DNA from: Macrostomum hystrix
Lineage: Eukaryota > Animalia > Platyhelminthes
Length of the DNA: 64,000 nt
Reading direction: 5' to 3'
Assembly (NCBI GenBank): GCA_950097015.1
Contig: CATNEN010000003.1
Span: 11,160,001-11,224,000 of the forward strand
Shown piece by piece: positions 17,001-20,000 of the stretch (position 1 is the first letter of the stretch; every line of letters begins with the position of its first letter). Both the position numbers and the translations under genes were made by a program. Under the pieces are notes generated by a model. That model searched no databases and was not told where the DNA came from. It saw only the letters and a list, made by a program, of their open reading frames with translations.

Positions 17001-20000
17001 GGCCTTCGTGCTGGCAGTCCTTCCAGGCATGCGAGCCGCCGCAGATTCGGCATCGCAGCTCCACCTGGCACTGAGCTGCACGGTGGCCGAACTGCTGGCA
17101 GCGCTGGCACTGCAGGGCGCGGACCGGCTCGTCGGTGCGGCTCTCTTCGCAGCTGAACTTCAGAAAGTCAGTGCAGATGCCTTCGCGAAGGCACTGGTCG
17201 AATGTCGCTCTCGACTTCGTAAAGATGCGCATGTACCGGGTGGCCTGCCCGGATGCTCGCGCACGGATCCGATGCACACTCGTGATATCGAGCTTCAGGG
17301 ACTCGCGGAGCATGCTGGCGAATTCGGCTTCCGTGAAGGAAAACGGCACGTCGAGCGCCACAAAGGTGAGCAGTGGCTGCTGCCGTACTCTGTCAGCGCC
17401 AGTCCGGTTGTCCAGCGGCCGTGATCGTGCTGGTCGACGCTCGACACGGTGTCCGAGGAGGCTGTCCTGACGCAGAGCACCGCCTAGGAAGACGTTGTAA
17501 TCCCGCTCAGTGGCCGGGAATACTAGGTAGGCGGGCTGATTGGCCATTTCGGCTGTGTTGACGGCACGGGCATCGCCGGCAAAGTTGGCCTGCAGCCAGG
17601 TGATGAAGGCCACCAGCTTGCCCGCCGCGTTTCGGTGCACTTCAAAGACCACCGGTGGAATGGCAGCCTGGGGTCTTCGCAATGGAGCGCGGGCCGAAGC
17701 CACCTGCGCATAGGGCCGCGCTGTCGCAGCCTGGGTCGTTGAAGCAGCCGCCGCTGCCGCCGCCGCCGACGCCGCCGACGAACCCGTCACCGCGGTCGCC
17801 GACGCTGCCGCCGCACCAGCCGCCGCACCTCGGCCGCCGCCGCCACCTCGCGTGCCTCGCTGTCTGCCGCCGCCGCCACCGCGGCTGCCTCGCTGCTGAC
17901 CGCCGCCGCCGCGCTGACCACGTGCGCCGCGCTGACCGCCGCCGCCGCGCTCTGCCTGCTGGTCCTGGGGCTGGCCTGGGTTGCCTTGCCGGTCGCCGAA
18001 GGGACCGCAGTCCAGTGGCTGGCTGTAGGTTGGGTCGTCGGTCGCCGCCCTCTTGCGCCGCAGCTCCGGCTTGGTGACGCGGAACGTCAGTGAGATGCGG
18101 ACGCCGGTCTGGGTGCGAACTGCAGGCACCTGATGCTGCAGCCGCTTTTGACAATTGCCTCCCATGAGGATCAGCGATCCCGGGAGCGTCTGAAATCGAT
18201 GCGTGACGTTTCCGTCACGTCGACGCAACATAAAAGTTCGCTCAGCGCCGAACGACACTGTAGCGATGGTCGGCTTGTCGCCGAGCTCCTCCTCGTCATC
18301 CGCATGCCACGGAATCCGGTCCTCCGGCTCGGTGTAGAAGTTCACCAGAACGGAGTTGAACTTCGGGACCTCGAGCCCAGCATCGTCGTAAAGGAAGTCA
18401 CGAATGTCTTCGATTACTGGATGCCAGGTTTGATTTTCCTTCAGCTCAACCCCGCTGTAGGTGTACGCCGGGCCGATCCAGAAGACACGGCGCTGCTCGT
18501 GCGGGCGATGACGGAAGGCGAGTGGGAGCACGTCTGCCATCAGGCGCTGGTATATTTGGTCAGCGACCTCGCCAAGAAAGTAGGGCGCGTAGACGATGGT
18601 GCAGTCGCCCGCGTAGGTCGTCTGCTGGCACTCGCTGAAGTCCGGCTCGTCAGGGAAGACGATCTGCGAGATGTCGGCGTCTGACTGTGCAGCGGTGGGC
18701 TTCGGAATTGTCGTCTGGGCAATAGCAGCCGACTCGGATGCTGTTGGCGCTGGCGCAGGTGCTGCCGCAGCCTCAGTCTGTTGAGCAGCCGTCTCGGCTG
18801 CCTCGGCTTCATCGACGGACATTCTGTCGGCCGTCTCGTTTGAGTCCGCAGTCGCGGGGGCCGCAGTCACTGCTGGAGGCTCGTCTTCGACGATGACAAG
18901 CCGACCTTCTGGTGGGCTGAACGAGCCGCGGTCTTGGGCGCTGTTGGCCGGTTCTGAGGTCTCGCTGGCCGGCGTCGGAGTCGACATCAGCGCTGTCGCG
19001 ACCTTCGGCTGCAGCTTGCGACTGGCGTCTTCGGTGCGGCCGTACCGATGCTCGAGCGAGGGGCGGCCGTCGTGTTTTTTTGAAGTTGTGGCGCGATTCG
19101 CAGCCATATGGCGTGATTTCTCACTGGTGCAAGGTAAACAAAATAAGCAAAGGGGGCAGGTGGCACACAAAGTGCGCACTCAAGGGAGGGGGTGGGGGAC
19201 TGCTAGACTAAAACTAAAACTAAAACTACAAGTACAGGGGGAGAGAGAGACTGCAAAAATAAAACTAAAACAGGTGAGAATGAACAAGGAGCACTATAGG
19301 GAGCTTACTGGTGTACTTTAAAAGTACCCCCTTCTAGGAATGGGGTTGCACAAATCAAGGAACACTCAATGAATGTACCTCTCCACGGAAATCTTTAGTA
19401 AAAGGCGAAAGATTTAAGCGTGGAATGAAGAGAAACCATGTCTTTAGTATGTCTTTAAAATGTCTTTAGTAAGAAAAAAATAGACAGGACTTTCTCGCAG
19501 CCAGGCAGTAATTAAAATATGAAATAATGAATTAATGAACTAAACAGTAAGAATTTAAAAGGAATGAGATTAACGCTAAAGCTGTGGAAGCGACAAACTA
19601 GGTGAACAATGGTTTTTAGTGAACTTAAAAGAGTTTCTGATAACTTTAAAGTAGTCAATGAAAAACTATATATATATTATATTATAATTGTACGAAAAAC
19701 TCGTAGGCCGTTAATGGCACATCATTTGGTGACACTAGACCCGCAGCCAGCGAGGAGGCAATTCTGCCCATTCCGCTGACCCCTGAGCACACACGCACAC
19801 AGATACTGTACGCAGGCAAACGCTCACACAGGTGTGTACATCTGCCCTGACTTTCTCATCGGCAGGCTGTGTACAATTTCACTGTGCCTTGGAGGTTGGC
19901 CCTCAAGGGCGTAAATTGCACGACAAGCCCCCAAGCCTTCTCTCCGCGGCTGCGCCCCAAATGAATGTGGCCTCGCCGCGGAAAAAAACTTTGGGACCGT

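Follow-up and report, generated by a model that had tools for sequence, protein, structure and literature searches.

Structure of the LINE in the window

The window, that is, the whole stretch of 64,000 nucleotides that was analysed, contains on its minus strand a LINE with two open reading frames and a U5 snRNA-derived leader. In the direction of the element, a 17-bp target site duplication (TSD; AAAGACATACTAAAGAC; 19440 to 19456) is followed by a single extra A at 19439, which is unlike both the target and native U5. The leader (UGGUUUCUC... through the 3' hairpin; 19326 to 19438) lacks only the native 5' AACUC. It is followed by the LINE 5' UTR (19108 to 19325), ORF1 of 898 aa (16411 to 19107; ATG at 19107, stop at 16411), ORF2 (13554 to 16343; ATG at 16343, stop at 13554), and a 3' UTR (12878 to 13553) with a CCCC...GGGG hairpin and then a conserved TTCGTTTTAACAAC terminus. 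The second 17-bp TSD copy (AAAGACATACTAAAGAC) occupies 12861 to 12877 on the same strand. Both ends of the element are directly abutted by the TSD copies (19456-19440 and 12877-12861), and there is no poly(A) tail at the 3' end. The 5' TSD copy is embedded in a short (ACTAAAGACAT)-like repeat similar to U5 loop I (UACUAAAGA). No empty-site paralogue of the window insertion was found, the sole nearby similarity beginning 27 bases past the TSD.

ORF1 encodes an AlkB-type domain (PF13532; 1e-22) of an ALKBH3-like 2OG-Fe(II) dioxygenase, together with an RGG-rich stretch and three CCHC knuckles close to the C-terminus. ORF2 encodes an apurinic-type endonuclease (PF03372/PF14529; EN) and a reverse transcriptase (PF00078, RVT_1; RT), and no RNase H domain was detected in it. 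The initial annotation had described U5-like sequence in sense with both ORFs, inside the TSD and ahead of a LINE with both ORFs complete, and this arrangement agrees with the open ORF1 and ORF2 and with the position of the TSD copies.

Identity of the U5-derived leader

The Rfam covariance model of U5 (RF00020) matches the window at 19444..19326 on the minus strand, over model positions 1-117 of 117, with 75.3 bits (E 5.6e-11) against a gathering score of 40. U5 is the sole Rfam family above threshold in the whole 64 kb window, and also the single credible match in a permissive Rfam scan of the element. The U5-derived portion of the match is 19438-19326. Its first six bases (19444-19439) consist of five TSD bases and the extra A, which replace the native U5 5' AACUC. 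In the covariance-model alignment, stem I and a paired 3' stem (the 3' hairpin) are present, loop I reads CGCCUUUUACU with the invariant U5 loop I GCCUUUUAC, and the Sm position is occupied by an Sm-like site, GAUUUGUG. The point of U5 that the family prefers for insertion (...UUUUACU|AAAGAUUU..., where loop I meets stem Ic) is intact here at 19396..19397. The U5 snRNA sequence heading the window LINE is confirmed. The initial annotation had recognized the first ~115 nt of the element as U5-like from these same four parts (stem I, loop I, Sm-like site, and 3' hairpin), and its coordinates, 19325-19439, were essentially correct. A self-cleaving ribozyme or another structured RNA was also considered as an explanation of the 5' end and was rejected, since no ribozyme family matched at E≤1 over 12700-19700, a range that includes the LINE 5' UTR.

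A U5 junction common to the LINE family

The junction between U5 and the 5' UTR is identical in all 16 genome copies that keep the 5' region, with U5 joined to ACTTTTAAAGTACACC in each. These copies span subfamilies that differ by 12-30%. Covariance-model matches reveal eight full U5 sequences in the genome, seven of which are directly followed by the LINE; the LINE-linked U5 copies other than that of the window score 66-83 bits. The lone full U5 with no LINE behind it lies at C1:23711081-23711196. Exact-pattern counts for the genome are eight for intact U5 5' halves, with one further 50-nt fragment, and 17 for U5 3' halves.

The U5 3' half of the LINE type (GGUACA...CAACCCCAUUCCUAG) differs from that of the LINE-free gene (GGAACA...AAACCUUCCAAG). 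As read from the Rfam alignment, stem I has a U-U mismatch in the LINE type, compared with U-A in the free gene. Between subfamilies, the U5 3' half is 96-100% identical, whereas the adjacent UTR is only 70-87% identical (Fisher p from 1e-6 to 7e-3). Judged from these comparisons, the LINE-borne U5 3' half is element-borne and selected. The first ~27 bases past U5 are likewise conserved between subfamilies. In the C38 copy, the 3' hairpin seems to carry a compensatory change, which depends on the pairing register chosen and was not counted.

The initial annotation had offered two readings, a one-off chimera or a family whose constitutive leader is U5, and had proposed aligning the 5' ends of all copies. 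This alignment refutes a single chimera, as every one of the 5'-retaining copies carries U5 at the same junction, and it supports a U5 leader that is constitutive and inherited across the LINE family. Assembly duplication of one locus is excluded by the differing flanks and TSDs of the copies. The interpretation in the initial annotation was thus partly supported; the main point that it missed is that U5 genes are targeted and U5 is rebuilt.

Insertion into U5 genes and tandem arrays

Tandem arrays of six, three, and three copies were found on C29, C12, and C1, respectively, with a regular unit spacing of about 6.3-6.5 kb. In nine inner array copies, the LINE 3' end is joined to U5 at the loop I border (...UUUUACU|AAAGAUUU); these junctions (n=9) read ...GTTTTAACAAC|AAAGATTTCCGTGG, and the site in U5 DNA is ...TTTTACT|AAAGATTT... 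The array on C29 has the order B-A-B-A-A-B, in which members of two subfamilies (identity to the window copy ~100% and ~88%) are intermingled, arguing for repeated insertion over simple duplication. With recurrent insertion at the same nucleotide and both EN and RT in ORF2, the element belongs among the target-specific non-LTR retrotransposons. The U5 site is a preference and not an absolute specificity: at least nine 3' ends, belonging to this family and to subfamilies related to it, follow T|AAA-like sites that are not in U5.

No native U5 3' half with native flank was found behind the last copy at any array tail. The tail of the C12 array keeps only AAAGATTTCgGTGGA, with unrelated sequence after it, and the last copies of the C1 and C29 arrays are truncated or rearranged. 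One stretch examined for array tails showed no similarity to the element. Clear segmental duplication was also observed, with related 3' ends sharing identical flanks at C38, C8, and C7, and with an array of ~12 kb on C25.

Copies outside U5 genes

Three TSD-flanked copies, those of the window, C2, and C25, lie outside U5 genes, and all carry U5. Their TSDs are 12-17 bp long. The leader starts at TGG (U5 base 6) in the window copy, with its 17-bp TSD, and in the C2 copy (TSD AAATATTACTAGC(T)). In the C25 copy (TSD AAGGCCCATTGA) it starts at AACTCTGG (U5 base 1), the point where the conservation of the native U5 genes begins. Off-target copies thus start at U5 base 6 in two of three cases and at base 1 in the third, suggesting that the U5 start site is also where the mobile RNA begins. 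The start of the C25 leader at the native U5 start gives indirect support for transcription from the host promoter. The window copy is best read as an off-target insertion outside a U5 gene, and its value is that nearly all of U5 (bases 6-117; from base 1 in C25), including the 5' half, is thereby shown to travel in the RNA intermediate.

Promoter-like and 3'-box-like motifs of U5 and U2 genes

A promoter-like (PSE-like) motif, ACGA[AT]AA, occurs at -71 relative to each of the three array-head U5 genes and at -74/-73 relative to each of the four U2 genes; elsewhere in the array-head and U2 loci it is rare. Since the array heads stand behind a motif that is common to U2 genes, they are native U5 genes. 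Their flanks are unrelated to one another, the short promoter motif excepted. No such motif precedes the copies of the window, C2, C25, and C38. The 5' flank of the window copy is the TSD within unrelated sequence, with no snRNA-type promoter motif at about -70.

A 3'-box-like motif, RTRCAAAAATAAR, was found downstream of three U2 genes and of the LINE-free U5 gene. The LINE, 5' UTR included, contains no match to it, and the window copy is thus without such a 3'-box-like signal. Both the PSE-like and the 3'-box-like motifs were defined from a handful of genes of this genome alone. The promoters of snRNA genes are described as external, not internal (PMC4494074). Read-through from U5 into the LINE is plausible, considering that RTRCAAAAATAAR is absent from the LINE, that no self-cleaving ribozyme was detected, and that snRNA promoters are described as external.

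Proposed mechanism and alternative explanations

Taken together, we consider it likely that this is a U5-gene-targeting LINE, in which U5 is an inherited leader, the target is rebuilt upon insertion, and the element is expressed by read-through from the U5 promoter. U5 DNA is nicked at ...TTTTACT|AAAGATTT..., where loop I passes into stem Ic. Because the 5' end of the element is itself U5, insertion leaves a complete U5 before the new copy and the old 3' half behind it. Repeated insertion generates head-to-tail arrays that are headed by a full U5 and whose inner copies start from AAAGAUUU. The 5' junction in U5 targets would probably be sealed by homology between the U5 part of the cDNA and the U5 5' half of the target. 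The LINE is probably transcribed from the promoter of the U5 gene. As the LINE replaces the 3'-box-like signal of the gene, RNA polymerase II starting from U5 +1 (AACUCUGG...) would read through, and the resulting U5-led mRNA would also be the template for retrotransposition. The window copy would be a very recent product of such a U5-led RNA, inserted into a U5-loop-like site, T|AAAGAC; this insertion brought along U5 bases 6-117 and made the 17-bp TSD, and it has no snRNA promoter motif upstream.

A one-off accident, in which the reverse transcriptase switched templates during a single insertion, leaving the LINE 5' end for a free U5 snRNA, would also place U5 in sense, 5' of the LINE and inside one TSD. 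U5 bases 1-5 are missing from the leader, and one untemplated A precedes it; missing bases and an untemplated nucleotide are common at LINE 5' junctions. Such an event may have been how the family originally acquired U5. As an account of the present copies it is hardly credible, given the one junction across diverged subfamilies, the inner array copies that begin at the loop I site right after the LINE 3' end, and a LINE-type U5 3' half that is unlike the free U5 gene and conserved in the LINE lineage. A single ancient insertion beside U5, followed by tandem or segmental duplication of one U5-LINE unit, would fit the regular array units of about 6.3-6.5 kb, the rearranged array tails, and the spread of some related 3' ends (C38, C8, C7, and the ~12-kb C25 array) by segmental duplication. 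This explanation is very unlikely, as the array heads have no flanking similarity beyond the short promoter motif, two subfamilies are interleaved within one array, the three dispersed copies have their own 12-17 bp TSDs, and the inner junction falls exactly at the LINE 3' terminus.

The element might instead be autonomous, with its own internal promoter acting from U5 +1 and a U5 fold that serves the LINE RNA, for example through Sm-core assembly, cap hypermethylation, nuclear import, or Prp8 binding. On this view, the family would enter U5 genes as a by-product of homology or of a weak endonuclease preference and not as a means of borrowing a promoter. The conservation of the U5 3' half, with its Sm-like site and both hairpins, above the neighbouring UTR is in favour of this reading; recent off-target copies with intact ORFs exist, as in the window, and the conserved ~27 bases after U5 could belong to an internal control element. 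We nevertheless regard it as unlikely, because the promoters of snRNA genes are described as external, the youngest copies cluster after the three U5 genes that bear a PSE, and targeting is a simpler account of a fixed nick site and a rebuilt target. The strong conservation of the Sm site and hairpins is compatible with roles in Sm binding, cap modification, import, or Prp8 binding, and does not require them.

U5-gene targeting, as preferred here, could be taken further, to a LINE that is now part of the host U5 supply and whose U5-led mRNA is handled like an snRNP, so that host and element are tied through U5. Three of the four promoter-bearing U5 genes would then combine a 5' half from the host with a 3' half borne by the element. 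One Pol II snRNA promoter would yield either U5 snRNA or, by read-through without a 3' box, the U5-led LINE mRNA. The Sm site and hairpins of the leader would direct an Sm core, cap hypermethylation, and nuclear re-import of the mRNA. We hold this extension only tentatively and think it rather doubtful.

Few LINEs target snRNA genes, and those described so far disrupt the gene that they enter. If true, U5-gene targeting, with a cut beside the most conserved loop of U5, would represent a new way for a retrotransposon to persist in an essential gene of low copy number, with full-length U5 preserved and an snRNA promoter gained, and it would provide a natural example of an mRNA made from a Pol II snRNA promoter. 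The effect of an Sm-site leader on the fate of LINE RNA becomes testable, and the question is raised whether the spliceosome of this animal runs on element-borne U5 sequence.

Comparison with known elements

Mammalian snRNA-LINE chimeras are independent dead-end events with variable junctions, and their LINE part is mostly 5'-truncated. Such chimeric retrocopies (U6-L1, U5-L1; Buzdin 2002, as cited in PMC4494074; PMC4476161) share with the window element an snRNA in sense 5' of the LINE, one TSD, and the LINE machinery. Unlike them, the U5 LINE has 16 identical junctions, inherited across subfamilies and conserved above the UTR, and U5 is also the insertion target of the family.

R2 trims the upstream host RNA by an HDV-like ribozyme. 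The U5 LINE resembles R2 and R1 in having no evident promoter of its own, a home in a multicopy RNA gene, presumed read-through from the host promoter, and a 5' junction probably aided by target homology. It differs from R2 in that no ribozyme was detected and three retro-copies keep the host-gene leader. Its promoter would be of the Pol II snRNA type, in contrast to Pol I for R2 and R1. Bacterial integrative elements insert into tRNA genes with a replacement 3' end. By analogy, they and the U5 LINE both enter an essential small-RNA gene that is restored by an element-borne copy, although they use a site-specific recombinase rather than target-primed reverse transcription and belong to a different domain of life.

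Among snRNA-gene targeters, Keno (Tx1 clade) and Utopia (RLE type) are both known from U2. The reported ones are limited to Keno, Utopia, Dada-U1, and Dada-U6 in PMC4640811, and a Tx1 family with a U5 target is named only in the Fig. 3 legend of PMC4494074. Like the U5 LINE, Keno and Utopia insert repeatedly at a single position within a low-copy spliceosomal RNA gene, with some off-target look-alikes; Utopia occasionally inserts into look-alike sites outside the gene (PMC4640811). Utopia leaves U2 genes disrupted (PMC4640811, Table 3), whereas the U5 LINE supplies the 3' part of U5 itself, so that U5 is restored to full length. With its AlkB and three-CCHC ORF1 and its Pfam Exo_endo_phos_2 match, the U5 LINE bears no obvious resemblance to Tx1 in these domains. 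SINEU elements, SINEs with U1- or U2-derived heads (PMC4494074), also have an snRNA-derived 5' head that is heritable in the whole family. They are short and non-autonomous, whereas the U5 head belongs to an autonomous two-ORF LINE, of which it is at the same time the target.

In profile searches, ORF2 matches L1 ORF2p over EN and RT with 1e-79, and its EN matches L1 EN (1e-23) above TRAS1 EN (2e-9). In a single-sequence search, TRAS1 EN was the sole EN match and was weak (E 0.02). The three CCHC knuckles of ORF1 and the PF14529 match suggest the Jockey/I/R1 group. The Atlas clusters for the element are only generic "endonuclease-reverse transcriptase". No ORF1 homologue was retrieved at E≤0.001 in a search with length-window and word limits, which does not amount to absence. 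The only close relative of ORF2 is P0001, with 56% identity.

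U5 leader and coding capacity of the LINE

U5 (RF00020) is the sole Rfam family at or above its gathering threshold in the window, and the match (19444..19326, minus strand) covers the full model (1-117 of 117) with 75.3 bits, against a gathering score of 40 (E 5.6e-11). The alignment includes stem I, loop I CGCCUUUUACU, an Sm-like site GAUUUGUG and a 3' hairpin, all of which had been claimed in the initial annotation. The LINE ends in ...TTCGTTTTAACAAC at 12878, and a 17-mer TSD, AAAGACATACTAAAGAC, adjoins both element ends (19456-19440 and 12877-12861), confirming that U5 lies at the LINE 5' end, in sense and inside the TSD. 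The coordinates first assigned to U5, 19325-19439, essentially hold with small corrections: besides the slightly different Rfam boundaries, the U5-derived part of the leader begins at 19438, at UGGUUUCUC, and a single additional A (19439) separates it from the 5' TSD. A permissive Rfam scan of 12700-19700 returned nothing further credible and no ribozyme.

Both ORFs are located on the minus strand, in sense with U5. ORF1, downstream of U5 (ATG 19107, stop 16411), encodes a 2OG-Fe(II) oxygenase/AlkB domain (PF13532, 1e-22; window 18075-18620, residues ~200-350), followed by an RGG-rich stretch and then three CCHC knuckles. The closest solved structure to the AlkB domain is human ALKBH3 (PDB 8jnr, 2e-23). 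ORF2 (ATG 16343, stop 13554) encodes an apurinic-type endonuclease and a reverse transcriptase, and has a single close relative among the proteins searched (56% identity), with all others at ≤28%. PDB-based comparisons did not separate L1/Tx1 from the Jockey/I/R1 group; the ORF1 architecture suggests the Jockey/I/R1 group.

Copies of the U5-led LINE in the genome

A search of the 5' 650 bases of the window element against its own genome retrieved 16 copies that retain the 5' region, all of which (16/16) join U5 to ACTTTTAAAGTACACC at the same base. The initial annotation had considered either a one-off chimera or a family with a constitutive U5 leader. Mammalian U6/U5-L1 chimeras have their layout in common with this LINE and are known as independent, non-heritable events. 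The junction shared by the 16 copies rules out a single-event U5-LINE chimera for the window copy and supports the constitutive leader.

Eight full U5 sequences were found by covariance-model search, and the LINE follows seven of them. The sole exception is C1:23711081-23711196 (L022; contig C1 of the same genome), hereafter the LINE-free U5 gene. Exact-pattern counts agreed with this: the U5 5' half is intact at eight places and present once as a 50-nt fragment, and there are 17 U5 3' halves. The fragment is isolated, has one loop-region mismatch (CGTCTTTTACT) and no LINE attached, and is located at C2:6515849-6515898 (L018). U1 snRNA genes are arranged in long tandem arrays that repeat every ~11.7 kb (C15, C17 and C42; e.g., C17:3102-120533); U2 has only four matches in the genome, and U5 only one LINE-free gene.

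Compared with the LINE-free gene, the U5 3' half of the LINE type is changed at several positions and, within its 3' hairpin, by an indel of two bases; it is therefore element-borne, not newly copied from that gene. In subfamily B copies, identity is 97-100% in the U5 3' half, 81-87% in the adjacent 218-nt UTR and 86-91% in the first 500 nt of ORF1; the corresponding values in the C38 copy are 96, 70 and 69%. For the difference between the U5 3' half and the UTR, one-sided Fisher tests gave p values of 1e-6 to 7e-3. The U5 leader is under constraint, its 3' half being much better conserved between subfamilies than the sequence behind it.

Relatives with 5' truncations, identical flanks and ~12-kb spacing were also observed (C25:8760776-8934181; C38:3046238/3058865; C8:3067541/3080240; C7:1968713), and those on C25 adjoin (CCTAA/CCCTAA)-like telomere-type repeats. 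The identical flanks at this spacing point to spread by duplication, segmental or tandem, and not by fresh insertion.

Insertion site and tandem arrays

Nine of the 16 copies start at AAAGATTTCCGTGG instead of the U5 start, and each of the nine is immediately preceded by the LINE 3' terminus (...GTTTTAACAAC|AAAGATTTCC). The insertion point in U5 is the loop I/stem Ic border (...UUUUACU|AAAGAUUU...), corresponding to 48|49 in the numbering of the Rfam match (47|48 if the A of AACUCUGG is the first base of the RNA). The LINE terminus is similar to U5 immediately upstream of this point (TTCGCCTTTTAC), which makes the inner junctions of the arrays a partial imitation of the target. The terminal TTCGTTTTAACAAC (window 12878-12900; 3' ends of loci L028-L055) and the preceding CCCC...GGGG hairpin persist in subfamilies that are only ~75% identical. 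Specificity for U5 is incomplete: nine or more 3' ends belonging to this LINE and related subfamilies lie outside U5. The preference for U5 may come from the endonuclease or from RNA/cDNA-target homology.

Head-to-tail arrays headed by a complete U5 are present on C29 (six units), C12 (three units) and C1 (three units), with a unit spacing of ~6.3-6.5 kb. Since the C29 array mixes two subfamilies in the order B-A-B-A-A-B (identity to the window copy ~100% and ~88%), repeated insertion would account for it better than simple tandem duplication. Under the insertion model, the oldest array copy should be followed by the 3' half of a native U5 and by native flank, but these are absent at the C1, C12 and C29 tails. 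At the C12 tail (C12:3697752 onward, L037), 15 U5-like bases, AAAGATTTCgGTGGA, give way to unrelated sequence; the last C1 unit (C1:13527212, L013) stops at element base 654; the last C29 unit (C29:3900404-3902347, L068) is internally duplicated and truncated. In the simplest account, a newcomer LINE with cDNA ending in U5 would enter the loop I site of the U5 heading a resident copy; the resident's U5 5' half would then head the newcomer, leaving the resident to start at AAAGAUUU. U5 genes rebuilt in this way could conceivably still give mature U5.

Native U5 genes and the template RNA

The flanks of the three array heads are unrelated apart from U5 and one short block, CACTACGA(A/T)AA(C/T)TAG(G/A). 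The block core, ACGA[AT]AA, is found at -71 in each of the three heads and, in front of the four U2 genes of this genome, at -74/-73; no such motif precedes the window, C2, C25 and C38 copies. Within the 3.1-kb loci it occurs 0-2 times in total (both strands counted, promoter copy included). We read it as a putative proximal promoter element of the snRNA genes of this species, and the array heads are native U5 genes. In the LINE-free U5 gene the motif is degenerate (GAACTAAAATTAGG instead of CACTACGAAAAYTAGG), suggesting that the LINE-occupied U5 genes may be the better-promoted ones. This gene also departs from LINE-type U5 in its 3' hairpin and in stem I, where it pairs U-A and LINE-type U5 has U-U. 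Behind three U2 genes and the LINE-free U5 gene, within a few bases of the RNA 3' end, lies the motif RTRCAAAAATAAR, which has no occurrence anywhere in the LINE; insertion thus looks likely to displace an apparent 3' box.

Three copies (window, C2 and C25) are off-target, lying outside U5 genes with their own TSDs, and all three carry both U5 halves. The leader of the C25 copy (TSD AAGGCCCATTGA, both sides) starts at AACTCTGG, the exact point where identity among the four native U5 genes begins. The leaders of the window copy (TSD of 17 bp) and the C2 copy (TSD AAATATTACTAGC(T), both sides), two independent insertions, start from TGG, five bases later, at U5 base 6. The window contributes a young, intact, TSD-flanked off-target copy, which proves that U5 from base 6 onwards belongs to the transposed unit. 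The U5 5' halves of the off-target copies and the C25 start point indicate that the U5 transcription start, or a point close to it, is where the template RNA probably began. The nick sites of the three off-target copies (CATTTT|AAAGAC, CTATTTT|AAATAT and ACACTT|AAGGCC) and other 3' flanks have little in common except T|AA(A/G). Inside a ACTAAAGACAT-like repeat, the window copy occupies the site ATACT...T|AAAGAC, which is similar to the U5 site TACT|AAAGAT.

Only external promoter elements are named for snRNA genes in a published description (PMC4494074). Together with a template RNA starting at U5, this would make read-through from the native U5 promoter at the array head the most economical source of U5-led RNA, consistent with loss of the apparent 3' box. 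The LINE is best read as a U5-targeting element that rebuilds its target and is probably driven by the U5 promoter.

Comparison with known elements

Keno and Utopia, both targeting U2, are the only LINEs reported to target snRNA genes, listed alongside the DNA transposons Dada-U1 and Dada-U6; Utopia insertion leaves U2 genes disrupted (PMC4640811). A Tx1 family with a U5 target is mentioned only in a figure legend (PMC4494074). Full-text literature searches retrieved no description of a U5-targeting LINE carrying part of U5, or of AlkB in ORF1 of a LINE or non-LTR retrotransposon. The closest behaviour is R2/R1-type co-transcription, from which this LINE differs in that the host leader is kept and no ribozyme was found. 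Its likeness to bacterial elements that integrate into a tRNA gene and restore it is by analogy only.

Surroundings in the window

The LINE is flanked on one side by an ankyrin-repeat ORF in the same orientation (25239-23545, minus strand; Ank_2, 1e-160) and on the other by two minus-strand ORFs, at 11613-10237 and 8047-6419, that match Mab-21_C weakly. Should these ORFs (6419-25239) form one gene, the LINE would be intronic and could be co-transcribed with it. Two shorter arrays (56419-57229 and 57730-58291), whose periods are 29 and 34 bp, precede a purine-rich 38-bp satellite (~138 copies, 93% matches), which extends from 58837 to 63989, to the window end, and accounts for the extreme GC/AT skew there.
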